From Octopus bimaculoides (taxonomy: Eukaryota), in assembly GCF_001194135.2 (NCBI RefSeq), contig NC_068986.1, forward strand, positions 6,732,373 to 6,796,372: a DNA stretch of 64,000 nucleotides. The letters run 5' to 3'. Every line of letters begins with the position of its first letter. Within the stretch, counting starts at the first letter, position 1. Made by a program: the position numbers and the translations under genes. Below, piece after piece: positions 7,447 through 61,100 of the stretch. Under the pieces are notes generated by a model that was not told the DNA's origin, did not search any database, and worked only from the letters and a program-made list of their open reading frames with translations.

Positions 7447-7917
7447 NNNNNNNNNNNNNNNNNNNNNNNNNNNNNNNNNNNNNNNNNNNNNNNNNNNNNN
7501 NNNNNNNNNNNNNNNNNNNNNNNNNNNNNNNNNNNNNNNNNNNNNNNNNNNNNNNNNNNNNNNNNNNNNNNNNNNNNNNNNNNNNNNNATATATATATAT
7601 ATATATATATATACAAGTCACTGTTCTCCACAAACAAAAAGAACCAGAAGATAGCTACCGCAAGCCAACATTTCTGACTCCTTACAAGTTTTGCCAATCA
7701 ATTACCCTGGTACTTTTTTCTTATTAATCCTTGAAAGGATGAAAGACAAAGTCAATGTTGAACCGAATATTATGAGCTGTTCTATCCAATGCTCTTACAA
7801 CAACCTTGCTAAGTTGTTAGCTTATTGGTTACATAGAGTGTTACTTACATATGTTCCATTATTACTAATAATAAATATCTAACACACAGAAATCAAAGAC
7901 TCAATTCTAAACATTAC

Positions 7918-9730: not shown

Positions 9731-12494
9731 TCAAACTCTGTTTGTGAAGACCTGTTGAGGCAAATGAAATCGATCCAAATTCGACAACTGGCACCCATGC
9801 CAACCTCTCCTTCATTGGACACTAAACTCGGCTTGCGAAGACCTGTTGGGGCAAGTGAAATCGAAACCATGATTGAACCAAATTCGATGACTGGCACCTG
9901 TGCCAGTGGAGCGCTAAGAGCACCGTCTGAGTGTGATCATTGCCAGAGCAGCTGTCTGGCTTCCGTGCCAGTGGCACGTAAATAGTACCATTTGAGCGTG
10001 ATCGTTACCAGCGTTGCCTTACTGGCACTTGTGCCGGTGGCACATGAAAAAACATTTGAGCGAGGTCATTGCCAGTGCCGCTGGACTGGCTCTTGTGTAT
10101 AAATAATTTTGCTGTACACTGACTCTTCCATGTACAATAAAACATTTGCAACTTTTGTTTGGCTTTTTCATGTAGATAGCCATCTATTGGTCTTCTTAGT
10201 CTAGGTTTTCACCTTGAAGAAGAGATACACAGCCTTGTAAGATATAAGATATACATAAGCCCTAAACTGATAGTGTTATTAGTAGTAACTGAATTGGAAG
10301 AGGTTACTGTTGTTGAGATAATGATAATTGTAATGGTGTTGAGGTGTTGGTGTTTGAGTGATAACAGTTGAAGTTGAATTATTGGCTCTAATTTTAGCTG
10401 AAGAAGTACTGTCTCTGATAATTGTGAAAGTGATGTTATCTATAATGTTGTTAGCTTGTGTTGTGGAGTAAATCTACACTAACACATTGATAGTCAATTA
10501 AATGCTTGAAAGCAATTCATAAGTCTTGCAGACGCTTGTATTGTACATCAATTTGGGATTGTATAGCTATATGATGGTTGTCTTAGTAAAATGCTAAATA
10601 GCAACCAATTTATGGTGCACATCTTTTTTTAGAGTTCTCCATGCAGAATACACACTATAAAAAGTAAACATGTAATGTGACAGACAACAAAACAGCCATA
10701 TTTCTTGTATAGAAATATGCTTCTCTATTACATATTATTGAGAGAAATAATTGCAGATCATGTAATCTTAACTCCAATAAAAAATGCTAAGAGGCCTGAT
10801 TTTTTAGTAAAAAAGGAAAAAAAAAAGAAAGGCCAACATATAAACATAGCACTGAATTCTAACTTCTTTAAGAAGTTGGAATTTAAACTTAGATCATTTA
10901 AGAAAAAAAAATTATCTTTTTCTCAATATACAGTTTGATGAAAAAAACAGAAATAGTTCACAGTTAATAATCAGCGTACTCTTCTCTTTAAAGTGAGGCT
11001 AGTGTAGCAATAAGAAATCCCTATTTTAATGACATTAGCTGAAAAGCCAAAGAGTTACAAGATATTAACTTTTGGATTAAAGTCATTATGGAATGCAAGA
11101 GGTTTGTATTCCATTTGTAATTTTAATAAGAATTAGACAATCATATTATAAAATACAAAACCATATATAATAATGAGATTGTATCATTAGCATAAGGCTA
11201 ATGCACATATTAGCAGAAAGCTCTGATTCTTTACATTAGCAGAAGGCTATGCAATTCTTCACATTAGCAAAAAGCTACATGATTCTTTCCATTAGCTGCA
11301 TGATCACATTCATATGATGAACTTCATGTCTGTCTACAAGTTGGTTGGAAGCTATAAGGCAATTGTCATTAGGTACCATTTGTATTGTGATAGTGAGTCC
11401 ATTTCAGCCTGAACAGCTTGTAGCAGGCTAGATGCAGTGTGCCATATCAATTCGATATGATGTAGCCCACTACTGTATGTGGCATATAGATGTAATGCTT
11501 CAAGGTTCTCGTGTAGGAGTAACCAGTGTACATCAAAGAATTAACTCCAAGAAGGAAGAAATGTTATTTACATATATTTATTCGTTTACCCGACAAGTTG
11601 TAAAAGAGACAGTAGCAATTCTAGCGATAGGGACGACAAGGATGACTCGCTGGTAAGTAGTTGATATGTAGAAAAAGATTGTCTGTCAGTAGAGAGGGAA
11701 AGAGTAAGGTAGTCATGGTGCTGACTAGAAAGGAAGAAAGGATAAAGACGGCATCACCTTTCTTATGGCCGAAAGCCTCTCTTTGCATGTCGAGCAAATG
11801 GCAAAAGGAAGTGCTACTCTTGGTTAAGGTTGCTGAAGAAGCGGGTGTTGCTCCTTGGTCTGGCTGATACAAAAGAGCTAGTGTTGCTCCTTGGTCATAG
11901 CTGACACATAAGAGGAAGAGATAGAAATTCTCTCTGTTATAGAGGCTATGGTCAGTAATGTAGGTCAAACCTTAAACAAAGGACTGACCTTTCCTTGACC
12001 AGTACAGATCCTAGGGGGTGGAGTGTTTCCTCATCAATCATCTAGTGTGAAGTATTTCCTGCTCGTTTTGACAAGCAACAAGCCAGTGGATTTGGTTTCA
12101 AATCTCAGGCAGGGTCAAACTAAACCCCCACAAGCTCTTCAATCACAGTCCAAAGTAGCTAATACTTGCACTTTCACGAGGCCATACAGTTCTAATAATG
12201 AATTTCATTAATCTCTCTACACGACTGGTCTTCATTAACTTAACCTCAAATTTATCCCAACGAATTTCGAACTTTGACCCTAAAGTGCCATAATTAATTA
12301 TTTCAATTCTGTCATATCTGCTATTCCATCATAAAAGACATAGCGACCATTTATTGACAGATTTAGATAGAAGCAACTATACAAAACTAGAAAATATTAA
12401 AAAATAGCAAATATACCAGTATCAATTTTTCTTTAACATTTTCCATAAATCATGAAGAGTTGCGTGCCTATCAAAATTCTATTATCATCATTGT

Positions 12495-13145
12495 CAATGT
12501 GAATACCCGTCAGAGTGTAAGTATCTTGAGAGAAAAGCTGAACATTAGAAGCATCAGTTGTGGTGTGCAAGAGAGACGATTGCGCTGGTATGGACATGTG
12601 GTGAGAATGGATGAGGATAGCTGCGTGAAAAAGTGCCACGCCCTAACAGTTGAGGGAACCCGTGGAAGAGGTAGGCCCAGGAAGACCTGGGCTGAGGTGG
12701 TGAGGCAAGACCTTCGTACATTGGGCCTCACCGAGGCGATGACTACTGACCGAGACCTTTGGAAATGTGCTGTGTGTGAGAAGACCCGGCAAGCCAAGTA
12801 AGATNNNNNNNNNNNNNNNNNNNNNNNNNNNNNNNNNNNNNNNNNNNNNNNNNNNNNNNNNNNNNNNNNNNNNNNNNNNNNNNNNNNNNNNNNNNNNNNN
12901 NNNNNNNNNNNNNNNNNNNNNNNNNNNNNNNNNNNNNNNNNNNNNNNNNNNNNNNNNNCGGGTGACATGTAAAAGCACCCACTACACTCTCTGAGTGGTT
13001 GGCGTTAGGAAGGGCATCCAGCTGTAGAAACTCTGCCAAATTAGATTGGAGCCTGATGTTGCCATCCGGTTTCACCAGTCCTCAGTCAAATCGTCCAACC
13101 CATGCTAGCATGGAAAGCGGACGTTAAACGATGATGATGATGATC
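12495..13145 (+). mobile_element. Young 5'-truncated RTE LINE (3' end), spans an N-gap
   Basis: Intact RRLRWYGHVVRM...GRGRPRKTW...DL C-terminus, a 3' UTR containing ttggcgttaggaagggcatccagc, and a (GAT)n tail. Confidence 0.93.
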
Positions 13146-13499: not shown

Positions 13500-14777
13500 C
13501 TGAAAAAATATCAGAGAATAAAAACAAAAAACAAAAGATGACTTTAAATCCCTTGAAAGCAACTGAGAAATCAATGGCTACATTTACATAGTTTAAAATT
13601 ATTATTTTTAAACTACCAAATCATAAAATCAACACTTACCCATAAACCTCAACTTGTCCCCATACTCAAAATAGATTCTTTTCTTCAACTCCCCGCCCAT
13701 CCCCAAAATATGTTTGTTCCTATATCCCAAATATAAAGGATTTTATGGCAGAGGTAAAGAATACGAACACCACCCATTTTTGGCGTAACGAAAACCTGGT
13801 TAATATAAAGATCCTCACTCGGGAACAAAAAACAAAAATTAACCAGCCTGGTGAGTGTTAACAAGTGTGTGGAAAACGAATATAAAAAAAAATGTGCGCT
13901 GACGACCCTGGGGGTGGGGAGGGGACTTCTACCCTTTGGAAAAGATTTTCCCCACAAATTACTTTATAATCGTAATGTATGCCGTTTGAAAGGTATTTCT
14001 ATAAAATTTCATTGAAAAAAACCCCATTTTCCTAAAAGTTATGAGGGAAAAACTCGGATCTTGTGAATTTTCCGAAGTCCTCTCCCCTTTCGCAATTTTT
14101 TTTTTTCATATTTGTTTTCTACACATTGTTTTACACCCATTCCAGTACTGGGGGGGAGGGTNNNNNNNNNNNNNNNNNNNNNNNNNNNNNNNNNNNNNNN
14201 NNNNNNNNNNNNNNNNNNNNNNNNNNNNNNNNNNNNNNNNNNNNNNNNNNNNNNNNNNNNNNNNNNNNNNNNNNNNNNNNNNNNNNNNNNNNNNNNNNNN
14301 NNNNNNNNNNNNNNNNNNNNNNNNNNNNNNNNNNNNNNNNNNNNNNNNNNNNNNNNNNNNNNNNNNNNNNNNNNNNNNNNNNNNNNNNNNNNNNNNNNNN
14401 NNNNNNNNNNNNNNNNNNNNNNNNNNNNNNNNNNNNNNNNNNNNNNNNNNNNNNNNNNNNNNNNNNNNNNNNNNNNNNNNNNNNNNNNNNNNNNNNNNNN
14501 NNNNNNNNNNNNNNNNNNNNNNNNNNNNNNNNNNNNNNNNNNNNNNNNNNNNNNNNNNNNNNNNNNNNNNNNNNNNNNNNNNNNNNNNNNNNNNNNNNNN
14601 NNNNNNNNNNNNNNNNNNNNNNNNNNNNNNNNNNNNNNNNNNNNNNNNNNNNNNNNNNNNNNNNNNNNNNNNNNNNNNNNNNNNNNNNNNNNNNNNNNNN
14701 NNNNNNNNNNNNNNNNNNNNNNNNNNNNNNNNNNNNNNNNNNNNNNNNNNNNNNNNNNNNNNNNNNNNNNNNNNNNC

Positions 14778-15098
14778 AGACCGGGCGTTGTGAGTGTTTA
14801 TTGAGCGAAAACACCTAAAGCTCCACGAGGCTCTGGCAGGGGATGGTGGCGAACCCTGCTGTACTCTTCCCCCACAACTTTCTCTCCCTCTTACTTCCTG
14901 TTTCTGTTGTGCCTGTAATTCAAAGGGTCAGCCTTGTCACACTGTGTCACGCTGAATATCCCCCGAGAATTATGTTATGGGTACACGTGTCTGTGGAGTG
15001 CTCAGCCACTTGCACGTTAATTTCTCGAGCAGGCTGTTCCGTTGATAGGATCAACTGGAACCCTCGACGTCGTAAGCGACGGAGTGCCAACAACAATA
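14778..15098 (+). mobile_element. SINE of the third family; its 5' end lies in the N-gap
   Basis: Reverse-complement homology to 43885-44160. Confidence 0.8.
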
Positions 15099-18169: not shown

Positions 18170-18611
18170 TCATCATCATCATCATCGTTTAACGTCCGCT
18201 TTCCATGCTAGCATGGGTTGGACGACTTGACTGAGGACTGGTGAAACCGGATGGCAACACCAGGCTCCAATCTAAATTTGCCAGAGTTTCTACAGCTGGA
18301 TGCCCTTCCTAACGCCAACCACTCAGAGAGTGTAGTAGGTGCTTTTACGTGTCACCTGCACGAAGGCCAGTCAGGCGGTACTGGCAACAGCCATACTCGA
18401 AATGGTGTCTTTTATGTGCCACCCGCACAAGCCAGTCCAGGGGCACTGGCAACGATCTCACTTGGCTTGCCAGGTCTTCTCACGCACAGCACATTTCCAA
18501 AGGTCTCGGTCAGTAGTCATCGCCTCGGTGAGGCCCAATGTACGAAGGTCTTGCCTCACCACCTCAGCCCAGATCTTCCTGGGCCTACCTCTTCCATGGG
18601 TTCCCTCAACT
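18170..18611 (-). mobile_element. Young 5'-truncated RTE LINE
   Basis: Near-identical reverse complement of the 12650-13145 copy, with a (CAT)n tail. Confidence 0.93.
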
Positions 18612-18712
18612 TGTAATCTGGATATAGAAGCTGGAAGTTTTGAAGCAGTTTTCCAGTCAAATTCTTTCTCTTTGATTTTCAAAGAGATATTCACATCAGC
18701 AGGACAGCTAAT

Positions 18713-19986
18713 GGATCTTTTCTGTTTGGCTTCCAATTTTGAATCTTCAATTTCTGTTAGAATTAATTTCATATTCAGTATAATGATATACTTTTATATG
18801 CTGAATGCCATGAAAATCATTTTTGCCATAAATCAATAAAGAGTTATTAGCTATTAAATTCTGAAAATTTTGGGTAATTTTAGCCAATCGTAAGCCACAG
18901 ACACATTCATGCCTGCTTCCATAGAAACAAGCCAAACATGAGAACTCTTGAGAAAGCACATGTTGATTAATATTCCAGTCATTGAGGTGGTTGTCGAATG
19001 TGCTAAAAAAAGCAGCCAAATAGGCATTAAATCATGCACCAGAAGGGGATGTGGTTTCGTACTTGCAAGAAAAGGGTGCTATACTCAAAAGAAAATTATG
19101 CAACATGAAGAAGCATTTTAAGAGCACAAGAAAATGTGGTGGGAATATATCTTGGCGATGCTTGTATCAAGGATGCATAGAGTTTGTGCCAGTGAGACTG
19201 TAGGACTATAGTGTTTTTCCTCATGGGTTAAGGAATTGACTTCAGTATGGTTTTGTGGTGAAGAAGTGGGGATAAACCATTGCACAGCTATTGATTATAA
19301 CAACTATGTTAGGAAAGTATGTGTGGAGGGCCTGCCTATCATCCAATTAAAGTTGGTGGTCTTGGGAGGATTGTTGAGATGTTTGTTTTTAAAAATATAT
19401 AATTTGTAATGTGCCATTTTGTTCTTGGATAAATCTTTTAAGTTTGTGCTATAAGTTTCTTATTTTGAGAAATGTTTAATTTGTAATGTGCTGTTTATTG
19501 CATTAAATGCATATTGAATGCTTAAAACTACAAAATACATGTTGTTCACTCGTTTTTTTGTTATTGAGGTGGTTGTCATCTGTGCTAGAAATCACAGCTA
19601 AATAGGTCTTAAATCACCCCCCACCAACAATTTGGTGGTGGGGGGGGGCATAGTTGTATGAATTCCTGCATGTAGACTACAAATTTGCAAAACTTTTCTG
19701 AAAATTTCAAGAATTAAAAAAGTTATGGGGGGTTTTATATGTTGTGCATAATTCATTTGTTTACAGTTTCATATAAAAACATAAGTGCTACTTTCAGGAT
19801 GTTGACAAAGTGTGCAGTCATGCATAAAACGATATCTTCCAAATCCTGTTTACTAACTAAGCGAAAATGATCAAACTGCTATAGCTCCAGTATTTCAGCT
19901 TGTAAAATAACATTAACGTACCTAATTTTAAAATTTTCAATAAACTTTGATTTTTGAAATCTTGGCAGCCAAACAGAAAAGATCTT
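18713..19986 (+). mobile_element. Merlin (IS1595/ISXO2-like) DNA transposon remnant
   Basis: Inverted ends GATCTTTTCTGTTTGGCT(T/G)CCAA. The internal frameshifted peptide SWVKELTSVWFCGEEVGINHCTAIDYNNYVRKVC...PIKVGGLGRIVE resembles Merlin DWxNxxREVC...IGGPGxIVEIDE. Confidence 0.72.
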
Positions 19987-22749: not shown

Positions 22750-23076
22750 ATGGGTAAAGATTTAGATATGGATACCCTGACGGCCTACAGTCATTATTTA
22801 CATGGAAGAATTAAAGAACAGTTAAACTCTTTGAACATAGGACCTGGTCGGTTTTATTTTCTGTCTGCAGTATCGTTCTTCATTTTGGGATTGATTTGCA
22901 TGATAGTTGGCATTTTGGTTATTACCCTCCGACATCGTCACGTTTATTTAATCAACTTTGACTACAAGTTTCTTGGACCTGGATTCATTGTTATCTTCAT
23001 TTTGTGCTTTGGAATAGGAACTCATTTATTGGTTCACGCAAAAGAAGTAACCAACAAATATCGTCGTAAACTTCGA
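22750..23076 (+). CDS. Unrecognised 2-TM membrane protein, coding exon 1 (109 aa)
   Basis: ATG...CGA|gtaagt. Two hydrophobic spans (FYFLSAVSFFILGLICMIVGILVITL and FLGPGFIVIFILCFGIGTHLLV) are followed by basic KYRRKLR. Confidence 0.85.
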
Positions 23077-24590: not shown

Positions 24591-27500
24591 CTATCAGACT
24601 CCTCCTGCGACGCTGGTGCTAAGTACTTTTCAAAGGAAAATTGGAAGACGGCATATTTAAGCATTTAGTTCTATATATTGTTTGACTGTGTGTAATTTAT
24701 ATGCATTTACTTCTGATGCTTCCGTCTGATATGGGAAAAATAGTAAAAGTATTTGAACGTATCCCGTTATATGCATGCATGGCGATAACGTACCCACTTC
24801 AGCCTTGGCGAATACGTAGCACTTCGCTGTAGACAATGTTTCTTGTCTTCCCCCGATGTATTAATGCGACCAGTCTGTCTCTACTGCCAACTCTGGAGCA
24901 TGCAACGTACAACTGGCCGTGGGAAAAGCAAGGCTCTTCCAAGAGAAGTCCGGCCACAGAAATAGTCTGGCCCTGGGACTTGTTGACAGACGTGGCGAAG
25001 CTGGGCTGGAACAGAAATTGTAGTCTTCTGAAGGCGAAAGGTATGTCTGCTCCCGAGGGAGTAAGAGGAATCCTAGGAATGAATACATCCTCACCTTTTC
25101 CGCATCCGGATAGGATGGTTGCCTCGACAACATGTTTCATCATTTTTTTTATAACCAGACGTGTTCCGTTGCACAGTCAGGGGGTGGGGAGCTCCAAATT
25201 GCGCAGAAGCATAACCAGAGTTCCAACTTTAAGGTGGAGCAGATGTGGCAGTAGGCTTGGAGGGTCTAAAGAGTTGAGGAACTCTGTTGGGAAATTCACC
25301 GATTCATTTGCATCTACAGATTTGTATGCGAAGTGACTGCAACAGTTGATCATTGAGTTTTGTAACGGTCACGTTTTGCAGAGCCAGCACTGCTCTTTCA
25401 GACAGCCATTCATGATTGAGATAATTATATTTTAAATGGAGAAACACTTTATCGGTGAGTTCAACCAAAGATGAAACTGGAGTTGCGAATGTGTAGATGT
25501 CCAATTCCCCATCAGTATCAAGAGGCACTTTACCGTCGCCAAGTTTCAGAATGTCACTTGCAAAGTTTGCCGTCATTTGGTTGCCGAGCAATCGAGCCCT
25601 CATGTTGATTGTCAGGGTCAGTGACCTGACATGACATCAGAGCGGAGACAACATAAGGCATGCTTGAACCTCATCTGCTTGCGTGCCTTTGGGGATAACA
25701 GGAAGAGTTTGCCTAAAGTCACCTGAAAGCAAAAGCGTAACACCTCCCATGGGGGCTTCTCAACCCCTGATATCCTGAAGGGTTCTGTTTAATGTGTTGA
25801 AGGCTCCCTTGTGGGCCGTAGTACACCCATCCCCACAATAAGCTGACAGCGTTTCAGCACTTGGCCCTGGTCAGAGTTCTTGCTTATATTGCAGGTAGGT
25901 CTTTCTGACTTAGTTAAAAATTGAGGGACAACTTAAAGGTGGAGTGTGCAGTTCTGCTGCCAGGCAGCAAAGTTGCAGCAATCCCTGAAGATGCGACTGC
26001 AATCGCAATACTCTTTTGCATTCTGAGCCTCGTTAGAAAGGTTTTGCCTGTACTCGCTGGAGCATTAAGAAAAAACAAGCCACCTTTCCTGTGGTGCACA
26101 TGATCAGTCACAATAGTATAAACATGCTGTTGATCTGGAAGAAGCTTTGGTTCAGTTTCTAGGATGAAATTGGCAAGAGCATCTGTGCCCAGGAAAAAGC
26201 AACTTCGCCTGACGTATGAAGTCCTCCGATAAGTCGTCTTTAAATTTGAACCCCAAAGACAAAGGGTTGTTAAGTTCACAAATTTGCAGCATAACAGCAA
26301 ATAGAGCTCGTAGACGCTTAGGTGTCTGGGATGCAACAGCTTCGAATAACGTAGCTTCCCATTGTGCATCGCTTTCTAGCAAACCGCACTTGAGGCATAC
26401 TTCCCTGTAAGTGCTGCAAACAGAGCCATCAACAGTCCTTAAGTCATCAAACGACTGGGGCCCATGTACCTCATGTAACAGAAGACGAAGATAAAAGCAC
26501 TCGTGTTAGCTCGGATGCACCGTGTAAACTCTCACAAGACAGCTGTCAAACTTTACACCAGATTGTCCGTCAACCAGCTGGCCTGACTTTCTGCGCTCTC
26601 ATTGTTGCTTAGTCCATGTGTAGTAGGATGGAACCTGAGAATAAAGCAAAGTTTTTGCAAATGGGTCGTTCCTGCACAGAGCGAAGAATGCAGTGAGAGT
26701 AGTTTGTCGAGGCTCTTCAACTTTGACTGTTCTCCAGGTGAACTTTGAGTTGCTCGATGGGTGGGTGCCTTTGGTGTATTGGAAAGCCGAAAATATACCA
26801 GAATGCTTCATTACTGCTAATATAATGGCCAACTTGGTATTGTAAGACCTTGTCGCAGCAGTTTTCCAGCTGTAGACCGAACATAGCAGCGTCTGAGCCC
26901 TTGTTGACATATTTGCAGATATACTTGAACTTGATGGAATGGCAAAACCCCACATTTATGTGGGCGCCAAACGTCTTTGAAAGAAGCGGTGAATACGGTA
27001 CAACCCATCTGTTGTCAACCTCATATTGTCCAATTTTCATGGTAAAGCCACCATCTGCAGATTGGCACCATCTGTACAGAGGGTATCCATCAATGCCAGT
27101 TTGTGTTACCTTCAGAAATTTTTTTGGAAACTTCTTGCAGCAGATATTGTTGTTCAAGCAAGGGGAGCCTAAATTGAATCCTAATCCACATGGCCCGTGG
27201 ATCATGGTCGCCTTGACTATTTCAAAGAGATGTCTGTCGGTAGATGGGTTTGGAATCTCGGCAGAGATAATCTTGTCAATATTGTTGGGAGGTATTTTTA
27301 GCGAGTGCCAGATTAGAATGTGAGCGTATGGTGGGCCTCTCTTTTGCCATTCAACAGTATACATATCACATCTAATGGGGCCAAATATTTGCCCTCCCTT
27401 AAGAAGCTCCATTAGTTTGATAAGCTTCAATCAAAAGACTCACACTAGGAGGTCATGACGGTCTTTTGCATGCTGGCCTGAAAACAATTCAGCTTCGATC

Positions 27501-30500
27501 TCCTTCCACGAAGGATTGCAGGTGAATGTAATGAACAAATTGGGCCTGCCGTAATGATGGACATAAGTCATAGCATCTTGCGTTCTCTCATGCATATACT
27601 GCGGACTTCCAGTGAAGGAGGATGGCAGAATGCAGAGTTTGCGTATGCTATCTGGTGTTGTGTCATTGATGAGGGTGTCTTGCAGATGAACGTAGCTGTC
27701 CAAACACAACTGCTTCTGGTGTGTTCGGATAAAACAGAGCCTCTCTAACTCCATTTTGGTGCACACATCCACAGCAAACTGATGAAAAAGTTCTCTTGAG
27801 TGGTGCATATAGTTGAAGGAGTTGTCACGAACCATGAAGTGATATGAGTAAAAATTCATGCAAGAAACCGTTTTGTTGGTGAACCTCTTCCGTCATGGCA
27901 TAACCTAAAAATGGAGGTTGTGGAACACTTAGCCCCAATCAGAAGGATAAAAGCAAGTGGCTGACAGGATATGTAAGTTTTTATGAAATAGGTAGTCAAG
28001 TACGAAGCCATAAGCACGTCTTAACAGAGAGATATCCATAAGGTGATTTAGTAGCAGTACAGTAAGCTGTGTTGCAATGGGAGCCAGCAACGAATCAAAT
28101 CACTTCTCAAAGGGACGATTAACATGTTTTCCACTATCCGCATTCGTAAGTGAATGTGAATTATCAACAGATAATGTCTAGCAGCTGTACCGTGAAGCCT
28201 GAGATAATGTTGCTTATCGATTTGTGAGGTAGAGGCGTTTGTTGAAAGTCCCTCTACCTATTTTTGTCAATGAGAGGTTGTACTTGATGAATGTGTTCCA
28301 ACAGCGTGAGGTGAAATGGCAAGGAGCAACAGTAGATGTAATAACAATTTTGTGACTTACCAACTGCAGCTGGATTAAAGGAGGAAGGGGTAGCTTTGAG
28401 AGGAGAGGTTGCAGTGAAAACGTTGGAACAAGACCGTGACTGGTGTTAGTGAAAACAAAAGGGGTTTTTAAGTAAGATGCAGTCATCGCTCGCAAAAACA
28501 CAAGAATAAACCAATGATGCAACCCTACCCCATTGTAAGAGGATAAAAGCATGAAGGGGTAAGCAGAACTGTTGGTGTGTTAGTAAGGGATGGCACCTAG
28601 TTGCTGTTTTGTGAGTAATGGTCAAATACTTACCGAGTATCCGAACAATATGGAGAAGTGTTGCCTTGAGCTGAGGCAAAAGAACAGGTGGTCCCACTTG
28701 GGCNNNNNNNNNNNNNNNNNAGACAATGCGTGGAAGTAATTCAGGATGTCTGATAGCAATTTGAAGCATGATTACAGAACGTGCGTCAGTGCGGAAAATC
28801 GGCATGGGCTATTGTGTGAAAGTCGGAGGGGATGGGTTAAATTTAGGTATCAACGTGAGGGGTAAAAAGGCACGGTTACAAACGGCAGCAGGAAGCAGGG
28901 TGCGGGGGTGTTGGAGCACAAATGAGGGGCGACAAACTGTAAAAATGAAGGGTTTCCGGGGCTGGGGAGAATTGGAACCTGTGTTGAGTGCAAATAGAGC
29001 AGGGCGTTTACGGCTGCAGATGATGGTTTGATGGCTGTTTCAATCCATCTAAGAGACCTACAAAAGGATACAACCGATTGTAAGACCACGTCGGCAGGAA
29101 GTGAGTTTATGTATGAAAGTAAGGACTTTTCAAGCAAACAGTATGAGGTCATAATAGCATGTTTACAATAACAGAGTGGCAAATGGAAAAGTCACAAAAA
29201 CAATGTGAGGCTGTAGGTAGGTACTGACAAAGTATGAGAATAAGAAATGGTGAGCATAACAAAGTCAAGTGTCCGTCATTGTGTGCGTGAGCAGGCGATA
29301 TGAGTATGAGTAAAGAAATAGCTGTTATAGTGGATCCCTAGCGTAAATAAATCTGAATAATCTGGTGTCACATCAAATGCTGGACCAATAAACACATTGA
29401 TTAAGTGGTACGCAGCTTCATTGTGCTTCTGTAGTTCAGGTTCAGTCTTCCGGTCATCTGCTGAGTACCGCGACGCCATGGAACTCTTTGGGTCAAACTG
29501 GAAATGCGGACCAAGTTTGGTTGAAATCGGATGACTTTTTGAAAAAAATCGATAATTATTGACCGAGTTTTTGTGAAAACTGAACATTGATCAAAGCAGT
29601 TGTTATGACTAAAACATGCCTCAGAACATACCTAATGCATATCTGAAATTTCAATCGAATCGGTCTGGTGGTTCAGCGGTTTGGCCTTGCTTCACCCAAA
29701 AGCACTTGTACATAGAAATTGTAAACAGCACAAAAATATAACTTTTTGAAAGGCAGCTTGGTATTGATTTGATTCAAAAGGTTACCAAGGTTATTGCTTT
29801 AACAATGTCACACTGCCCCCAAACTGTCTTTTCTCAAGTGTAAGGCCTCATGTTTCTGCAGTTTCATGGTAATTTATTAAGACTTGGGCAACACTGGTTA
29901 CTACTGCTAGTGAAATGGATGAAGGAAGTAGTAAGTACTTACCAGTAGCTTGTGCAGTGCAGAGGCTGTTATTGCTTTAACTATCTCATGTTACACATAG
30001 AAATTGCTTTTGTTTATTGCAATGGAAAGCCTCAGTGCCAGATGTTTACTGTTATTGGCAGTGGCTATTTTGAGGTCACGTGGGGTCAAAATGTGTGTGC
30101 ACACCATGGTGGAGATTAATTGTTTATGCATCAGAGAAGGAATGGGGTCAGTGTTCTGAGAAAAACAAATCAGGAGCTACCTCAACAAAGGCATTTTGTT
30201 CAAATGTGTGTTTGTTGAATTGTGCTCAAACATAGCGCAATTTAATGAAATAAATCATGGCATAAGACTTGTTGGTTGAAAATGCATTCATTTACCGCAG
30301 TTTGGTTTAAATCAGTTCAATGGTTCCAGCGTTATGGCCTGCCTTAAAGGCATTTTTTGAGTCAGTTTTTCCCATGCTGTGCTCAAATGAAATGAAATTT
30401 GAAAAAAATAACGAAACGAAAAACCTTGGGTAACAATGCATAGGTATATCAAGTTTGATCAAAATCAGACGACTTTTTGAAAAAAATCGATAATTATTGA

Positions 30501-33314: not shown

Positions 33315-33385
33315 TTCCGTGCATTAGGAGAATATGGTGTTGCCGTCCTTCACGTTTCACAAATTCAAAAGAAAGAACAACAAGG
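33315..33385 (+). CDS. Unrecognised 2-TM protein, exon 2 (71 nt)
   Basis: ttttcttctttcatag|TTC...CAA GG|gtaat. Encodes FRALGEYGVAVLHVSQIQKKEQQ(G); phase 0 in, phase 2 out. Confidence 0.8.
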
Positions 33386-33945
33386 GTAATATTCTTTTCA
33401 ATTTATGGAAAATGTGTATCAATAGATGAAAAGATAAATGAAAAGTTGAAGAAAGAATAACTTGATTGTTGAGATTTTCTTTTGCTAGAAAGAAAATTTG
33501 CTGAGGCATAGAATGCTTATTATTTTGAACTTTAGAAACAAAAAAGAGATGTTTTTATTCTTGGGAAAATGAGGTGGTAACATTAACAAAAATTATATTG
33601 ATTCTGGCACCTCTTCATGCAAATGTTAATTATTCTTCCCTCTAACATTTTTTTTATTATGCCTTAGAAAACAAAAACTCGTTAAAAACTGGTTTTTGGA
33701 TTTTTNNNNNNNNNNNNNNNNNNNNNNNNNNNNNNNNNNNNNNNNNNNNNNNNNNNNNNNNNNNNNNNNNNNNNNNNNNNNNNNNNNNNNNNNNNNNNNN
33801 NNNNNNNNNNNNNNNNNNNNNNNNNNNNNNNNNNNNNNNNNNNNNATTCACTTTCAAGATAAAGAAAGTAATTTGTATTCAGGAGTCAAAGCTGTACTTT
33901 CACAAAAGGAAAATTTCAAATACTCTTGGGTTAGTTTATTAAGGA

Positions 33946-38027: not shown

Positions 38028-38563
38028 TCAAGACACAACCTTGGATCTCTGGGGGATGTTAGTAGACATAGTTATAGATCTGAAAAGTCCCGAGCATCTT
38101 CCCAAGATTCTATTGACAAACCAACTGGCAGAACCGTGAGAGGCCGAAGGGATCCACATTTTCAAGCCAGAGTCCAAGATTCTGACTTTGATGACAAAAG
38201 TGACAGTTCCAGGAGTCGAGATACCAGAGATGGACATAGTCTCCCTGGTGAAAGGTTTCAAAGTGCACCTAGAGGCGCACCTAGGGGAATGCCTAGAGGC
38301 ATGCCTAGGGGTATGCCTAGGGGTATGCCAAGGGGTATGCCAAGAGGTATGCCTAGGGGCATGCCTAGAGGAGCACCTAGAGGGGCACCAAGGGGTATGC
38401 ATCCTCATGGTTCAGCTCCACCATTTGATCATAGTTATCAACCTCAAGGAAATAGAGGTGGTCAAATGCGATTTCATTCTCAGCCTGGAAATCAATCTCA
38501 TCATAGAGAAAGAATTGAATACGACCCTCGAGGACGCCATGTTGAAACACATCAGGGTTCAAG
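38028..38563 (+). CDS. Unrecognised 2-TM protein, exon 4 (536 nt) with the (A/M)PRG x11 repeat
   Basis: ttcttgttctaatccag|TCA...TCA AG|gtttgt. The frame is open throughout and contains ORF-track 38136..38618. The sequence is R/S/D/G-rich and low complexity. Confidence 0.85.
38265..38396 (+). repeat. Coding 12-bp tandem repeat, 11 units: (APRG)2(MPRG)7(APRG)2
   Basis: Read directly as units of gca/atg-cc(t/a)-ag(a/g)-ggN. Confidence 0.97.
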
Positions 38564-40809
38564 GTTTGTAAAATGCTTTTTAATTTTTTCATTTGAACAA
38601 ATTAACAATGTAAATTAAGTTTAGATATACTGAATTAGAATTATGTAACCCAAGATAAAGTTATTTTTAATAATAAATCAGGACTCAAATTCATTTACAT
38701 TTACAAACTTTCAATGTTTTGAAGGCTACTCTGTTGAAAGTATTTCTTGTGAATATCTTAGTCTGTATTTTTATTTCATCATCATAATCATGTAACATCT
38801 GTTTCTCATACTGGCCTGGATCGGATGGCTTGACAGGATCTGATGGGTCAGAAGACTGCATTGTGTTCCAGTGTCTGCTTTGGTATGATTTCTATGGCTG
38901 GATTCATTTCTGATGCCAACGGCTTTACAGAATGTGCTTTTTTTTTTTATGGCACCAGCACTAGTGATGTTGCCATGTAACTCACAAAATTATTTTCTCC
39001 TTCAACTGCAATAGGGAAGGAGGCAGCTTTATGCTAGGAGAAAAATGTTAAAGTATAGAAGGGGTCAGAACAGAGTTCATGTTGTAGAGGAGATATATGG
39101 CTACACATTATATAAGAGTGGGAGGAATTGGTGGGGGACTGGAAAGAAGAAATTGTTGGTTATGAGGTGTTATGGTGGATGTTCAAAGTATGATGATGAT
39201 GAATAGAAGTGTGTGTGGGTAGAAGAGGGTGTATGGGTAGGTAGATTGGTGGGAGGGGACGAGTTGATTACATTGACCCAAGTGTTTCACTGGTACTTAG
39301 TTTAACAACTCTGAAAGGATGAAAGCAAAGTTGACCCCAGCAGAATCTGAACTCAGAATGTGAAGACAGACAAAATGCTTAGCTGCATTTTGTCCAGCAT
39401 GCTAACGACCCTGCCAGCTGATGATGATAATACAGTAGTGATGAGAATAAAGGAGATGATGTCTGGGTGGGTGCGAGTGCAGAGTCAGACATAATGAGAG
39501 ATATGTGGTGATAGGTTTTTGTTTCTTCTCCAAGGCCCCTAAGTAAATAGTCTTGTATAAATATATCTGGTTTTTGTTAAAAAATATTTGAAGATTAAAA
39601 TTTCTTAGAAGGAAGGTCATCTTCATTTAACATCTTTTTTTCCATGCTGGCATGTTGGGCCAATATGTCAAAATCGTAAAATAAAATATAATTTGTAAAA
39701 CAAAGTATTAGAATTTTAAAATGGTTTTTGTTGATCCACACATAGATTCAAGAGATTGCGTAAATCCATGATTAATAATTGACAAACATTTGACGTGTAT
39801 GTTTTATCCATTCTGCATTAAATAAAATATATTGTGATCTGAAAAGCAAATGTCTTGATTACAACCTGCCTACTGTACATTCAACCTTTAACCTTCTAAT
39901 TATTCTGTCAAATGTAATGCTTATTTATTCAGATAGCTTTGAGATCTTGATGGTGTGACTATTTTGAAAATGATGTTGGATAGGTGTGAGAGGCTGGTTC
40001 TGGCCAATTTGGACATAAAATGGGTAGGATGTGGAAAGTGTAAATGTTAAAGGTGATTAAATCTAATGAACTTCTTTCTAGGGAGTTTTAAAGCCAAAAC
40101 TATTTTAGAGTCTAATTAATGATAACTAACTTTCAATAATTCTACTTTTTATTTATAGTCTTCATCTCATGCAAGACTGAATCTTTCCCCATCTTAAGTG
40201 ATAACAAGCTAAAGATAGACAATAAATATTTGTATTAATACAGCAGTCCTCTTTCTTAAGGATATCCTCCATACCAAATTATTTAGGAGTGCAAAGAAAA
40301 GACAGTACAGACCAATGTTGAGGGAAGGGAACTTGGATCTTAGTATATCTAATCTAAAGAGACCCACACTGTCACAAATGCCAGCACTGTCTTATGATCC
40401 CATCAGACCATGAAACAATTTGTCTGGTCCACTTGTTTTGATCCTTTACTAAAGAGAAAGGTTTTTCATACATGCCTGATAAAGTCAAGGTTCACTTGTT
40501 TAATATTGACATTTCCTGGCAAACTCAATTAGCTTATCCAGTAGGGGTCTCACTAGTAAGGGATAAAAGTCTATATCAAATTGTGTATATCTAGCTTTAT
40601 ACCTGTCATTTATATTCTTAAACAAGTTTATAACAGTGTTGCTATTGACTCAGTACCATAGTTTAGTAGTTTCCATAATTCTATTAAGAGAGAAGACTAT
40701 GCTGATATAGTAATGAAATGGGTATGAATGAGGACAGCCACTAAAAGAAAGTTAAAGGCTGAATGTACAGTAGTCAGGTTGTAATCAAGACACTTGATTT
40801 TCAGATCAC

Positions 40810-42489: not shown

Positions 42490-42556
42490 GCAACCTACTT
42501 CTTCAGATGATTCCAGAGATATAAAAGTTGATACATCCTCTGAGTCAGAAATTTAA
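42490..42556 (+). CDS. Unrecognised 2-TM protein, terminal exon 5 (67 nt)
   Basis: ttttttctttaatttgcag|G CAA...ATT TAA. Encodes (R)QPTSSDDSRDIKVDTSSESEI*; the phase-2 join is exact. Total CDS is 1059 nt = 352 aa plus stop. Confidence 0.8.
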
Positions 42557-50149: not shown

Positions 50150-51100
50150 ATCAGGATGAGGCATTAGAATGGATGGTTTGACTGAGGAATGGAAAGCCAG
50201 AAGGCTGCACCAGGCTCCAATCTGATCTGGCAAGATTTCTACAGCTAGATGCCCTTCCTAAAGCCAACCACTCCAAGAGTGTAGTGGGTGCTTTTTACAT
50301 GCTGCTGGCACGGAAGCCAGTCAAGCATTGACCATGCTTGAATGGTGCTTTTTTTAGGTGCCAGTCGGGCAGCACTAGCACGAGCCATGACTATGATTGG
50401 TGCTTTTTATGTGCCACCGACATGGGAGCCAGTCAGACGGCACTAGCACAGGTCATGCTCGAATGGTTCTTTTTACATGCCACTGGTATGGATGCCAGTC
50501 AGGCGGTACCAGCATTCGCCATAATTACGATTTCACTTGACTCAACAGGTCTTCTCAAGCACAGCATATTGCCTGATGATTGAAGGGTACTTTTAAATGG
50601 GCCAGTTATGTGACCCTGCCATTGGCCACAGCTGTGATCTTGACTTGCCAGGTTTTCTCAATCACAGCATATCTCCAAAGGTCTCGGTTGCTTGTCATTG
50701 CCTCCCTGAGGCCCAACATTTGAAGGTTATGCTTCACCACCTCATCCCAGGTCTTCCTGGGTCTACCTCTTCAACAGGTTCCCTCCACTGTTAGGGTTTG
50801 ACACTTCTTCATATAGCTGTCCTCATCCATATGCAACACATGACCATACCAGCACAGCCATCTTACTTGCACACCACATCTGATGCTTCTTAGGGCCAAC
50901 TTTTCTCTCAGGTCGTTTACACTCTGTCGAGTCAGCAGAGTGAATTTAGTGCTTTTTATGTGGCACAAGCACAAGTGAGGTCAGTTTTGGCAAGGCTTTT
51001 ACAGCTGGATGCCCTTCCGAAAACACCAACCACTTTACAGTGTGGACTGAATGCTTTTTAAGTGGCACCTGCACTGACAAGGTCATCAAGTAACTTGCAA
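50150..51100 (-). mobile_element. RTE 3' end plus an adjacent tail fragment
   Basis: RWLCWYGHVLHMDED...VEGTC on the minus strand, with the 3' UTR and its internal repeats. Confidence 0.88.
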
Positions 51101-51939: not shown

Positions 51940-53575
51940 ATTATTGTTTAATGTCCATTTTCCATGCTGTCATGGGTTGCATGGTTTGACAGGAGCTGGT
52001 CAGCTGTCCAGACTCCAATTGTCTGTTTTGGCATGGTTTCTATGGCTCAAATGGCCACCCATTTCACAGTGTGTGTGTGCTGGGGTGCCTTTTATGTGCC
52101 ACTGGTGCAGGTGTGAACACCAGCATGAGTGCACTTTACCTGGCACTGCCACCTGCAAAGGACAAGCAGGTCTGTCTGTGTGTCTGGATGGCTGCAATTT
52201 TACTTAGCTTGGTGTGTCTTCGCAAGCACAGCTAATTTCCACAACACCTGGTCCCTTGTCATCTCCCCATGAGGCCCAGCATCTAAAGATCCTTTCTCAC
52301 CACTTTGTCCTACATCTTCCTGAGTCTACCCCTTCCACAGGTTCCCTCTACAATTAGAGTTTGGCACTTCATTAAGCAACTGTCTTCACCCATAAACATC
52401 ACATGACCATACCAGCTTACTTTTACACAAGTCTAAACTGACATATCTGACATAGATCACTCTGTATTATCATCACCATCGTTTAACATCCGTTTTCCAT
52501 GCTGGTATGGAACAGTTTGATTGAGGTTTGGAGAGCCAGCGGCTGCACCGGGCTCCAATCTGATCTGGCAATGTTTCTACAGCTGGATGACCTTCGTAAC
52601 ACCAACCACGAGAGTGTAGTGGGTACTTTTTATGTGCCATCAGCACAGGAGCCAGTCAGGCGACCCTGGTATCAGTCACGTTCGGATAGTGCTTTTTTTA
52701 GTGCCACCGGCATGGGAGCCAGTCGGGGGTACTGGCATCAGTCACATTCAGATGGTGCTTTTTACATACCACCGGGATGGGAGCCAATCAGTGGGTACTG
52801 GCATTGACCACGTTCTGTATGTATAAATTATATCGATTTGTGAAGCTAGCATGCTCTGCTGGATGTTTAATGTCAGTGTGCATACACAGGGTGTAAGCGC
52901 CCTGAGAGAAAAGTTGGACATTAGAAGCATCAGATGTGGTGTGCAAGAGAGACGACTGTACTGGTATGGTCATGTGCTGCATATGGATGAGGACAGCAGT
53001 GTGAAGGAGTTACACCCTAACAGTGGAGGGAACCTGCAAAAGAGGTTGACACAGGAAGACATGAGATGAGGTGGTGAAGCATGACCTTTGAATGTTGGGC
53101 CTCACAGAGGCAATGACAAGTGACCAAGACCTTTAGAGATACGATGTCATTGAGAAAATTCGGCAAGCCAAGTGAGATCGTAGCCATAGCTGATGCCAGT
53201 GTTGCATAACTGGTCCATTTAAAATACCCTTCAATCATCAGGCAATATGCCATGCGTGAGAAAACCTCTTGCGGCCAGTGAAATCGTAGTTGTGGCTGAT
53301 GCCAGTGCTACCTGACTGGCATCCATACTAGTGGCACATAAAAAGTACCATTCGAGTGTGGTTGATGCCAGTGCCACCTGACTGGCCCCTGTACTAGCGG
53401 CCCATAAAAAGCACCCACTACACTCTCAGAGTGGTTGGCATTAGGAAGGGCATCCAGCTGTAGAAACCTTGCCAGATAAGATTGGAACGTGGTGCAGCCT
53501 CCTAGCTTGCCAGTCCTCAGTCAAACAATCCAACCCATGCCAGCATGGAAAGTAGACGTTAAATGATGATGATGA
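51940..53575. mobile_element. Three RTE 3' ends: 51940-52440 (-), 52470-52810 (-), 52850-53575 (+)
   Basis: RRLYWYGHVLHMDED ORF on the + strand. (CAT)n and (GAT)n tails define the orientations. Confidence 0.88.
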
Positions 53576-56865: not shown

Positions 56866-57396
56866 AGGTATGAAATGTTTTGGCATCACTGAGCTGATGC
56901 AGACTTATCTGACATCAGGCATTTTACAGTTTCTTTCGTTCTCTTCTGTATGTGTAATGCTTTTCTATTTGTATGTTTGACTCCAGGACCAAAACAAGTT
57001 AAATGTCCAGTCAGCCAAATCCTCCACATCCAAACAATTGCACCTACTTAACTCTTGTTGTTTACAACCTTATTATAGATTATATGCCTTTGCCTTTACT
57101 TTCCAAAGTATTAAAGTTTTACTTTTAATTCATAATCAAAATCCGATGCAAAATTCCTACATCCAGCAATTCATACCCTACGATCCAAGGTACTTTTGAA
57201 TGGGCTGGGGCTGGTTATGTGAAACTGGTGTAGGATACAGCCGTGAACTCACTTTATTTGCTGGGTCTTCGCAGTCACAGCATATCTCCAGAGGTCTCTG
57301 TCTTTCGTCATTGCTTCTGTGAGGCCCAACAGAGGCGATAACGAAAGACAGAGAATATGGATGTTAAAATGCTTTAATGAATTAAATCTAACTTAC

Positions 57397-58139
57397 CTGG
57401 ATTTTCTGATTGGCCATTTGGAAGTTTACTTCCAGATTGGTTATAATTGATGTAATATACTTGAAAATGTTGTGTTAAATGAGTGATGCTTTCATTTTGA
57501 CAGGTGTTATTATCATTTGATCCTGTTTTAGATACATTTCTTTCTTCCATACTTTGATTAATTTTGGATATAGAAACATTTCCCAGAATAATTGATACAT
57601 TTAAGAAAGTAATTCCTGTTTTGTTCCATGTATACTGATAATTAACTTGAAGAACAACATTATCACAAAATACTTCATTTTGCCTTTTTTTAACAGTAGG
57701 AACAGGTGGTTTTGTATAACTGTCATCCCAAGAACAACGTGTTTCAAAAAGTTTGTTTCCATTTACAGATTTATTAAACTCTTCTTTCCAATCATAGACT
57801 GCAGTGTTATAGGTTTTTACATAGGAATTTACATTTTTAGCACAGAAGTAATTAACATCAGTAAGAATATTATTAGAAGGTGCAACACAATTTGAGTCAA
57901 TTAGTGAGGTTGGCAGAACATAAGACATAGCACTTAATACAGAACTTCTTGAACAGATGTCATTGTCTATGTTAGAAGTGCAATCAGAAGTTATATTTAC
58001 AAGGTAAGGGAGAGGAGCTGATGTAATGCATTGACCAGTGAATATCTTTTGAGGTAAATAATTAGTTGCTGATGAACGACCATTATTTATCAGATTTTCA
58101 TTTCCTTCATCCAAAGAACTTTGAGGAGTATTTTTTTCT
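57397..58139 (-). CDS. TCTN2: Tectonic (TCTN2-like) large exon, 743 nt
   Basis: tttccag|A GAA...CCA G|gtaagt. Contains PQKIFTGQCITSAPLPYLVNITSDC, CDNVVLQVNYQYTW, QHFQVYY and SENPG, which are tectonic DUF1619-type motifs. Confidence 0.9.
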
Positions 58140-61100
58140 CTGGAAACAGACGAAGGAAGACAATTATACAATCCAGTAAAAATGCAATAGTTTATAAGTC
58201 AGTTTTTGTTTAATGCATATTTCCAAAAAATAAACTTGGTTTATAAGTCAGTAGTGTAAAAATATGAGAGAGAGAGAAAGAGAGAAAACCATAAGGAAAA
58301 ATTTGTTCAACATGTTAAAGGTTGCATCAAAATGCCTCAGCTAGACAAATTGTGTTTTCACTCCATTAAAATTTAGAGTTTCAGTCTCAGTAATGCTCCA
58401 ACATGTAAGAATTGAGATTGTCCATCAATTTCCAAATGTAAGGAAGTGAATTCTACCTTTACATAAAAGAATGAAGGAACTGTATGTGTTTAGTTCTCAA
58501 TGTCCTCCAGCAGATATTAATTTAGTTCTGTATGTAAGTACATTTCTGAGAGAGTTACCATTAAGTGAGCAAAACATTTTGTGACTGAAATAACATTCTG
58601 CCAGTTGGGTTGATGGAATGTTTCCATTTCTATAATACGGATTAAATTGAAGTTAACTCTAACATTATTCTTATTGCAAAGTTTATGATATTTGTGTTGC
58701 AAGAGATTTTTGTCATGAAGGATGGGAAATTTTTTTAGCTAGCCACATTGCATGCTATTCTCATGCTGTATGTGTGGCAAGTGTTAAACTAGACGAAATA
58801 TGTTTTCCTAGTTCTCTTGTACTGAGATTTGGGCTTGTTTCATGTATCTTAGTTTTTCTTTGAAACCACATATCATGCATCAATATGGGTTAGATACTTT
58901 CCTCCTGTTAAGTACTAAATATTTTATGATTGTGGAAAGATAGTTGGACCTTTAGTTTACAATTATACTGTCTTTTAGTATTTTATAGCTGTAGTGCTTG
59001 CCCATAAGTTATGACACGGTTCTTAGGTTGATGGTCATCTTTGATCCCTTAATATTGTGTATGACAAATTTGCATGACACTGTATTTGTCAGTCCTGTAC
59101 TACCTGGCCATATATGAACCATTCTTCTTCACAATCATTTTAAAAGAAGTTATAAGCTCTCCATCCTAAGGGAGAATTTTTACTCTCTTTGTCTTATTTA
59201 CTTATACCCTGTGACATACATTGTTAACATCAACCCATGTCTCTGGATTTATGTTGATTTTTCCTGGAGTTGTCTTTATTGAAACTTTCAAGTGTAGCTG
59301 TGTGAGTAAGAAGCTTGCTTCCCAATCATGTGGTTTTGGGTTCAATCCCACAGCACAGCATCTTGGGCAAATCACTCCTACTACAACTCTGGGCTGACCA
59401 AAGCCTTGTCGGTGGATCCAGTGGATGGAAAGTGAAAGAAGCCTGTCATATGTATGTATCTGTGTATGTGTCTGTGCTTGTCCCCCATCAGGACCACTTG
59501 ACAACCAATGTTGGTTTGTTCGTGTCCCCATAACTTAGAAGTTCAGCAAAAGAGACCAATAGAATAAATACCAGGCTTAAAAATCAGTACCAGAAGTGAG
59601 TTGTTAAACTAAACTCTTTACAATATGGCTGAAGTCCAATGACTGAAACAAGTATAAAAATATATCGTTCTTTGAGCAACAACATATGCAATGATTCCAT
59701 TGATAAATTAATGGCAGATATGGCTTTTGGGATAATAACCAAAGTAATATAACTATTTCTTCTGTGCAAACTTTGATGTCTGATATATATCTGTCTGATT
59801 ATTCATCAAGTGACTGGGATGAAATAATACTTGAAGAATGGTCAGACACTGCTGTCGGTCCAAAAATACCTTTTGGATTTGTCAAGGTATTTTTTTTCCC
59901 ATTTCCTACTGAGTTTTAATCAATGCAATTGCTCAACAAATTAATTTGTATATAGAACAACAAGAAGCAGACATCTTTGTTTTGACATGCATTAAAATTC
60001 GTGTATACCTGCAAATGTTATTTTGGAATGAAGTAACTCAACTTGCTTATAACAAGCTGTAAAAAGTTCAGAAAAAAACTTTTTTTGTGATGTTTAGTTC
60101 TTACTAATTACATTTATTACCAACATATTTTAATCTTTTTTTTAGTGTAGCTGCTTTTAATTATTATGTAATTAACAAACACACATGCACAACATTATTT
60201 TTGGCACAAATGACTATCTACATTTAAAAAACAAAGCAAAAACAACTAAAACTGTCAATTTTCACAATAATCTGACCCCACAAGTAAATACACTATCAGC
60301 AAATTGAATAAACAATTTTTCAGCTATTTTCTGCTCTGTCAATACAGAACTGAGCTTTTCACCTAAATTTTCAACACGAAGCTAGAAGTTAATGCTTTCC
60401 TAAACTTGTCCATGCCAAAACCATTCAGGCAGTGGAAGATTGCCAGTTCATCATTCCTATATAATCCTCTGCTGGGAGCAACTTTTGGTTTCTTTTAAGA
60501 TTATCTCAAATATATGAATCATCTAATTTAAAGACTTTAGCACCTTAAAGCTACCAATAGAAAAGTTAAAAAGTTTCTCACCTTTTTTTTCCACCTAGGA
60601 AGAGATGTTATAAACCAAGAGCAACTTACTGTAGTTCATTATTATGCTGGTGTCATTAATAATAGAAAACACTTTAGCAAATTCCAAGATTTTTTTAAGG
60701 AAGAGATATAGAAATTTTTGAGTAAAATTCCACTATATTGAACTTGCCTACTTTTCTATGCCATCAAATTGCTTTATTATAAAGCTGTGACAATTTTGTG
60801 TAAGCCTAGTTCATTTTTGACCCTTTAAGGTAATATATGGCTTATGTATTGCTAGGCATTCTACCCTAATACATATATATTTAAGAGGCTGGAAATTATG
60901 CCTTGTTGTTAATTATATTGTAAGAATTGGACTTGTATTTTTGGAAGTTTTAGTAGTTGTCTGACAGGAATTTGGAGTGGGTTGTATTATATAGTTCATG
61001 TAGATTTATTATTTTGTTGACAAATATGTGGTTTCTGTGGGTGTCGTAAATGGATATCTGATCATTTAAAAGGTTTTCAAAGCTACTGGTGTGATAGCTA

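Follow-up and report, generated by a model that had tools for sequence, protein, structure and literature searches.

An (M/A)PRG tandem peptide array in the predicted disordered tail of a member of a molluscan family of predicted two-pass membrane proteins, read from an Octopus bimaculoides locus

A tandem repeat of exactly eleven head-to-tail, in-frame 12-bp units (132 bases), which encodes the peptide (APRG)2(MPRG)7(APRG)2, lies in a stretch of 64,000 nucleotides of Octopus bimaculoides DNA, hereafter the window, and, as judged by comparison with related sequences, is very probably a translated part of exon 4 of a predicted membrane-protein gene and subject to selection at the level of the peptide. 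As a whole, the observations are best explained, with a probability of about 0.6, by an (M/A)PRG array in the tail of a conserved two-pass protein, which would present a multivalent string of motifs at the membrane. The array and the degenerate unit adjoining it are located as follows.

38265..38396, + strand, (APRG)2(MPRG)7(APRG)2 array, residues 232-275 of the predicted protein; from sequence, translation, Tandem Repeats Finder and unit match to the 11 units of Argonauta

38397..38411, + strand, degenerate twelfth unit MHPHG, directly 3' of the array

The sequence-only reading had described eleven units with proline, arginine and glycine codons that vary only synonymously and a first codon that is either GCA or ATG, which the sequence and its translation bear out. 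The first codon is GCA in four units and ATG in seven, two codons that differ in all three bases and between which no intermediate codon is present. Proline is encoded by cct (eight units) or cca (three), arginine by aga (five) or agg (six) and glycine by all four of its codons (ggt in five units, ggc in three, gga in two and ggg in one). Across the units, the six first and second positions of these three codons are invariant (diversity 0), and the wobble positions of the P, R and G codons show a diversity of 0.44, 0.55 and 0.75, respectively. If three of the nine P-R-G columns vary, the chance of these being precisely the wobble columns is 1/84 and, as 8/27 of the possible single changes are synonymous, the probability that at least five distinct changes are all synonymous is (8/27)^5 = 0.002.

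That the units differ only at wobble positions within the P, R and G codons speaks against a repeat maintained neutrally or at the DNA level, be it a slippage minisatellite in a frame open by chance or a DNA or RNA element based on a palindromic CCTAGG core. Such an origin would be compatible with the perfect 12-bp periodicity, detected independently by Tandem Repeats Finder (score 129 for period 12, score 138 for period 24), and with the fact that the array can be read without stops in other frames and on the opposite strand as well and that CCTAGG is palindromic, but this core occurs in only 4/11 units and the APRG frame alone is conserved in both flanks. The same frame stays open through the entire exon 4. 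Two overlapping reading frames, a minus-strand ORF at 38028-38408 (126 aa) and an ORF in the +2 frame at 38188-38571 (127 aa), were considered as genes and rejected, being open only since the repeat has no stop codons there and not being conserved in the orthologues.

With respect to the gene that carries the array, a full HMMER scan with exon 4 yielded 294 matches at E <= 0.001, nearly all of them at query positions 78-124 and thus repeat noise, among which P0157 and P0076 alone reach into the flanks of the repeat, and these flank matches led to the gene model. Mapping of P0157 (367 aa) on the window by tblastn gave five collinear segments on the + strand, from which the splice sites were read. 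The resulting model comprises five exons on the + strand with a 352-aa product; the four introns are all GT-AG and their phases are compatible.

22750..23076, + strand, exon 1, beginning with ATG, 109 codons, ending in phase 0 at the donor CGA/gtaagt; encodes an N-terminal helix and two membrane helices with the motif GILVITLRHRHVYL

33315..33385, + strand, exon 2, 71 nt, FRALGEYGVAVLHVSQIQKKEQQ, the conserved beta-hairpin segment, with the sites ag/TTC and GG/gtaata; from tblastn with P0157

35303..35360, + strand, exon 3, 58 nt, HDLKSGHLQHVVSPTPRGT; from tblastn with P0157

38028..38563, + strand, exon 4, 536 nt (178 codons and 2 nt); encodes the larger part of the predicted disordered tail, rich in Arg, Ser, Gly and Pro, with the repeat within it

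42490..42556, + strand, exon 5, (R)QPTSSDDSRDIKVDTSSESEI*, stop codon TAA included

Exon 4 is bordered by the strong acceptor ttctaatccag/TCA (ttctttattcttgttctaatccag/TCA at 38028) and by the donor CAAG/gtttgt after 38563, and given the stop-codon frequency of the window, 178 open codons are expected by chance with P = 2e-5. On either side of the repeat, the sequence can be aligned in frame with P0157 and with the Argonauta hians protein P0162. The assignment of the array to a coding sequence in the tail of a predicted membrane protein, already part of the sequence-only reading, is thereby upheld, both flanks aligning in one frame to orthologues that include spliced mRNAs. Exon 1 has its own set of homologues (P0003-P0011) and by itself matches genomic ORFs at 50-94% identity; its conservation with L001, a 20-kb locus around the exon-1 homologue P0004, ends just beyond the donor, at window position 23084 by blastn and 23079 by tblastx. 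The same 20-kb locus contains no match to exon 4, the introns being too long. An exact look-up of the window exon-4 ORF in public assemblies returned no record, no protein identical to the window product was among the matches of the searches, and a literature search on the peptide string and the LOC identifier gave no match.

Tetrapeptide repeats of xPRG type are common in metagenomic proteins, as the exon-4 HMMER scan shows. When the exon-4 peptide alone was used as a query, the sole matches were P0001, an ORF of 108 aa from a Tara Oceans metagenome with the repeat (GMPRGVAR)n, and the similar P0002; nothing aligns beyond the repeat and both were rejected as relatives and classed as low-complexity look-alikes. 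On the contigs of P0001 (L002 and L003, Tara Oceans marine metagenome), the repeat reads as a PRG-type peptide on both strands.

The DNA of the window is eukaryotic and AT-rich and contains assembly gaps as well as remnants of transposons. Runs of N, seen as X-runs in the ORF translations, are located at about 7420-7560, 12800-12960, 14160-14790, 28700 and 33700-33850; one such run lies in intron 2, between exons 2 and 3 of the repeat gene, and no exon is touched by gaps. Intron 1 harbours, on the minus strand at 24799-27859, a fragmented Helitron-type remnant with a coding sequence broken into several ORFs, in which three segments are recognized by Pfam.

27440-27859, minus strand, Helitron_like_N, Pfam E 2e-35

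26717-27430, minus strand, Helitron_like_N, E 5e-6, 27.2 bits, just under the Pfam cut-off of 28.9

25914-26369, minus strand, PIF1-like helicase, E 2e-17

LINE-like fragments are found at 6350-6802 (minus), 12460-12801 (plus) and 18458-18772 (minus), the first with a weak endonuclease/exonuclease/phosphatase match (E 0.003, below cut-off), and two near-identical LINE-like C-terminal ORFs contain the string GRGRPRKxWAEVVRQDLRTLGLTEAMTTDRDLWKCAV. Three arrays of a related 66-bp unit, one of them inverted, occur at 50359-50514, 52627-52804 and 53291-53415 and look like interspersed SINE- or satellite-like copies; the ORFs 18251-18839 and 12510-13075 have similar peptide strings in common, which suggests a dispersed repeat family. 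Further downstream, a 265-aa open stretch on the minus strand (57374-58171) matches a Tectonic domain (TCTN_DUF1619, E 1e-7, above the Pfam cut-off) and is, by this similarity, probably an exon of a tectonic-family ciliary gene that is convergent with the repeat gene.

The product of the repeat gene was modelled with AlphaFold2 from a family alignment of 15 sequences. The model begins with a helix at residues 7-25 and two long hydrophobic membrane helices at 34-63 and 70-106, which have a pLDDT of 80-94 and form a hairpin that is the one part modelled confidently. A beta-hairpin (108-122) and another helix (123-137) come next, and residues 151-352 are without secondary structure and have a pLDDT below 50 at nearly every position. 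The tail of about 200 aa, including the repeat at residues 232-275, is thus predicted to be disordered; it is composed of 16% Arg, 13% Ser, 12% Gly and 11% Pro. A basic cluster, KYRRKLR, directly after helix 2 suggests by the positive-inside rule alone that both termini are cytoplasmic. The Pfam scan of exon 1, exon 4, the full protein and six orthologues returned nothing above threshold and, at E <= 1, only weak sub-threshold noise from membrane families, and the PDB was searched by sequence with the family profile and gave no match at E <= 1. Class I PDZ-binding C-termini have the form [S/T]-x-hydrophobic-COOH, a pattern present in the -S-E-I end of the window protein, which is therefore listed as a putative ligand.

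42542..42553, + strand, C-terminal E-S-E-I, fits the class I PDZ-ligand pattern, with Ser at -2 and Ile/Leu at 0

By sequence similarity, the gene is a member of an uncharacterised family of predicted two-pass membrane proteins found across molluscs, the orthologues of which are named after LOC115213486. A family profile search, which scored only the 8000 candidates sharing most words, so that the family may extend beyond molluscs, identified as full-length relatives the cephalopod-like P0157 and P0161, proteins of Ruditapes, Mizuhopecten, Solemya and three Haliotis species, and further Logan and ENA sequences. Also among them, P0162 of Argonauta hians ('uncharacterized protein LOC115213486', 396 aa) shows 61% identity over full coverage, and P0157 and P0161 are, judged by similarity alone, inferred to come from non-octopod cephalopods.

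In the family motif G-[IV]-L-V-I-T-L-R-H-R-H-V-Y-L within exon 1, the residues G54, L56-R61 and R63-L67 are invariant and H62 is present in 14/15 orthologues. The juxtamembrane segments F-R-x-x-G-x-Y-G-V-x-V-x-H (F110, G114, Y116, G117, V118, V120 and H122 invariant in 15 orthologues) and L-K-[ST]-G-x-x-x-H (L136, K137, G139 and H143 invariant in the same 15), in the window protein FRxxGxYGVxVxH and LKSG..H, are encoded by the two small exons. At the other end, the C-terminal E-S-x-[L/I] of the 15 orthologues has an invariant S350, an E349 conserved in at least 90% and a last residue that is always L or I. Between these parts, the tails have a length of about 180-250 aa, contain 16-27% R, 5-21% P and 6-15% G and possess many RG and PR dipeptides; an enrichment of Met (4%) is limited to the two octopods.

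Evidence that an orthologue is transcribed comes from P0161, an intact ORF of 377 aa that is indexed in 34 blocks of the collection; 24 contigs were read, and those shown, four in number, are Logan assembly contigs of 2.3-2.8 kb. A genomic contig of a related species has these coding segments distributed over more than 12 kb, for which reason the Logan contigs with the P0161 ORF are taken to be spliced mRNAs, and the orthologue is therefore transcribed in this frame. The genomic contig L005 (ENA ERZ21867824, contig ctg115095l) has, compared to the mRNA contig L006, an insertion of one nucleotide in a run of eight G at about 10438-10447, which splits exon 4 into two ORFs; as the downstream frame and the last exon are conserved and the mRNA contigs of the related species are intact, this is probably a homopolymer sequencing or assembly error rather than a sign of a pseudogene. 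The gene models of Ruditapes P0166 and Mizuhopecten P0169 lose the family tail and the C-terminal motif part-way and look frame-shifted (cf. the mRNA-derived P0165).

Comparison with Argonauta hians addresses directly whether the DNA or the peptide is conserved. The orthologous locus of Argonauta (L004) is likewise divided into five exons, the junctions of which coincide with those of the window gene in protein position and in phase, and the C-terminal KVDTSSESEI is identical in both proteins. In a Nei-Gojobori estimate for the two species, the whole coding sequence has a dS of 1.30 and a dN of 0.159, synonymous sites thus being essentially saturated, and a dN/dS of 0.12, with a dN/dS of 0.07 for the membrane exon, 0.17 for the tail upstream of the repeat and 0.35 for the tail downstream. 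The Argonauta array likewise consists of eleven units at the same place in the tail. When the units are paired one to one, an orthology assumed from the equal unit number and the alignment of the flanks, 32/33 core P-R-G residues are identical and only 8/32 of the codons for these are, with one array Arg being cgt in Argonauta versus aga/agg in the window. Four Argonauta units contain extra prolines, which are whole-codon differences. At the 3' end of the array, M-HPHGS of the window is aligned opposite G-GPRGM of Argonauta, a pairing in which unit-level homology is approximate. Just upstream of the repeat, the Argonauta exon 4 (6064-6731 of L004) contains an internal duplication of about 44 aa, with RRD(P/S)NFQPR..SDGSRSQDTRDGYRYHDDRPRGAPRG present twice and in single copy in the window species.

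The retention of the P-R-G core and of the unit number at saturated synonymous divergence supports selection on the peptide and leads to the rejection of neutral slippage, as the sequence-only reading had anticipated when it preferred the former and proposed the cross-species count of units and of synonymous versus non-synonymous differences that was carried out here with Argonauta. Argonauta retains peptide and unit number and not the DNA, and a repeat of neutral origin or with a role at the DNA level is accordingly very improbable. The comparison supports an array that is old, length-stable in octopods and under purifying selection, the peptide, the frame and the number of units having been held while the DNA was randomised. 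The same comparison lends no support to one feature to which meaning had been attached, the mirror symmetry of the units. The A2-M7-A2 order exists in the peptide and not in the codons, which differ, for instance, between units 1 and 11, and taken alone it is weak evidence, amounting to one of the palindromic orders that make up 10/330 random arrangements (0.03), or to a chance of about 1 in 5 if only the split of the four A units around a central M block is asked for. The unit order in Argonauta, APRG GYRG MPPPRG MPPRG x3 MPRG x2 ..., is asymmetric; because of this the mirror order is without comparative support and probably due to chance.

What is selected in the peptide is a separate question, for which the tails outside octopods are informative. 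The strict (M/A)PRG array is seen only in the two octopods and the exact unit is absent from the other orthologues compared. Other cephalopod-like orthologues have an irregular RG/PRG-rich stretch, ARPRGPPMGRPPYRGGPHYRGGGPPRGPP...RGRGRGGPRGRGRGGPPRG, the Solemya tail contains about ten DDRRGPPRGP units and the Haliotis tails contain DDRRRH and RGDYEKRRPPPDDRE repeats, bivalves and gastropods thus having other Arg/Pro/Asp repeats. From these sequences, lineages look to have repeatedly built their own tandem repeats in the tail and, as no exact copy of the unit is kept beyond octopods, selection across the family may act on tail composition and not on any one motif. In overall design, the family looks like a constant membrane anchor and a constant C-terminal tag with a disordered Arg/Pro/Gly tail between them.

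These findings would fit an array on which selection acts solely to maintain a disordered, flexible and positively charged linker of set length and composition, with no partner that reads (M/A)PRG: the tail is predicted to be disordered, and what the whole family has in common is limited to Arg/Pro/Gly richness, tail length and the C-terminal motif, with a different repeat in each lineage. The retention of 32/33 P-R-G residues and of all eleven units between the octopods at saturated synonymous divergence is tighter than composition alone requires, however, and the first position of the unit varies across both octopods (M, A, G or Y) as expected of a motif with one free position. A mere spacer is consequently rather unlikely, though a credible account of the tail.

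The preferred reading is a string of short Pro-Arg-Gly linear motifs that would be held at the membrane and act multivalently. The array could dock readers of Pro/Arg motifs, such as WW, SH3 or EVH1-type domains, and by analogy with known motif proteins the chance that it serves as a multivalent docking platform is put at about even. As every unit unites the 'PR' context preferred by CARM1 with the 'RG' context of PRMT1 and PRMT5, the array would be a likely substrate of PGM/RG-type arginine methyltransferases, and methylation could tune docking or create ligands for Tudor domains; that the arginines are actually methylated is, on the same analogy, rated as less likely than not. A further anchor, for PDZ domains, would be provided by the conserved C-terminal E-S-x-[L/I], and docking of the tail by WW, Tudor or PDZ domains is plausible by analogy. 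In its most extended form, the proposal would be a mollusc-specific membrane adaptor with a methylation-regulated PGM/RG-type array that recruits WW, Tudor and PDZ proteins or nucleates a condensate at the membrane, the octopod (M/A)PRG x11 being its most regular version; taken together, so complete a scenario is unlikely.

Instead of docking Pro-recognition domains, the array might bind RNA or form condensates at the membrane as a tri-RG-type domain. The tri-RG pattern is RG(X0-4)RG(X0-4)RG, which is matched by the eleven RG dipeptides in a row with two residues between neighbours; the tail is predicted to be disordered and is rich in Arg, and the Haliotis homologues are automatically named 'pre-mRNA-splicing factor 38B-like'. 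Against this stand the absence of RGG triplets from the array and of an RNA-binding domain from the protein, which is predicted to be membrane-anchored. The splicing-factor name, publicly given to the Haliotis proteins P0172 and P0176 and apparently derived from their Arg/Asp-rich low-complexity tails, is not backed by any match in the Pfam scan of P0172. An RNA-binding or condensate-forming role in place of docking is thus improbable.

Coding peptide repeats conserved within disordered tails are a known phenomenon, and the repeat itself, an ordinary coding tandem peptide repeat under purifying selection, changes no general view; what is new in detail is the family concerned and its membrane setting. 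The case is a clean one in that the unit number and the P-R-G core outlast full synonymous randomisation, which makes it a natural test of motif-level versus composition-level constraint in disordered tails. The analysis also flags an unannotated, strongly conserved family of molluscan membrane proteins (membrane hairpin dN/dS 0.07, invariant LRHRHVYL-type motif, conserved PDZ-type end), the public names of which are 'uncharacterized' or misleading as in the Haliotis case. If the tail were methylated, PGM/RG-type regulation, so far known from spliceosomal and RNA-binding nuclear proteins, would be extended to a membrane adaptor.

With respect to known systems, cephalopod rhodopsin has a repetitive, Pro-containing cytoplasmic C-terminal tail and had been put forward as a precedent for repeat tails on membrane proteins. 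As an analogy this holds, but the two are unrelated, the protein described here having two predicted membrane helices versus seven and a different repeat unit, with neither a 7tm or opsin match nor any other Pfam domain passing threshold. The array resembles the RGG/RG (GAR) tri-RG class, RGG/RG motifs being a canonical context for PRMT1 and PRMT5 (PMC4919620), as it likewise has many close RG dipeptides in a disordered Arg-rich region, yet differs from it by not being glycine-rich and by a Pro before every Arg, in addition to the missing RGG triplets and RNA-binding domain.

PGM (proline-, glycine-, methionine-rich) motifs are substrates of CARM1 and a subset of them substrates of PRMT5 (PMC4919620), with SmB, U1C, SF3b4 and CA150 as listed examples (PMC3925732); in vivo, CARM1 motifs include 'PR', with Pro kept as a determinant and the roles of Met and Gly questioned (PMC5458078), and FBP21 engages Pro-Arg-rich peptides of SmB/B' multivalently through its tandem WW domains (PMC4464085). 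The array places Arg within Pro/Gly/Met-rich reiterated units, seven MPRG and four APRG, and thus combines the same residues P, G, M and R in short repeats as SmB/B', U1C, SF3b4 and CA150, with Pro before and Gly after every Arg. The units of SmB are of the PPGMRPP type and looser, whereas the array here is a strict tetrapeptide. The comparison with the SmB tail, drawn already by the sequence-only reading, is thus apt for the motif and does not extend to homology: there is no sequence homology to the PGM proteins, and neither an Sm (LSM) fold N-terminal to the tail nor another domain was found with Pfam at E <= 1 or in the PDB sequence search. While the known PGM substrates are nuclear RNA-processing proteins, the octopod array represents a motif string of the same composition in a predicted two-pass membrane protein.
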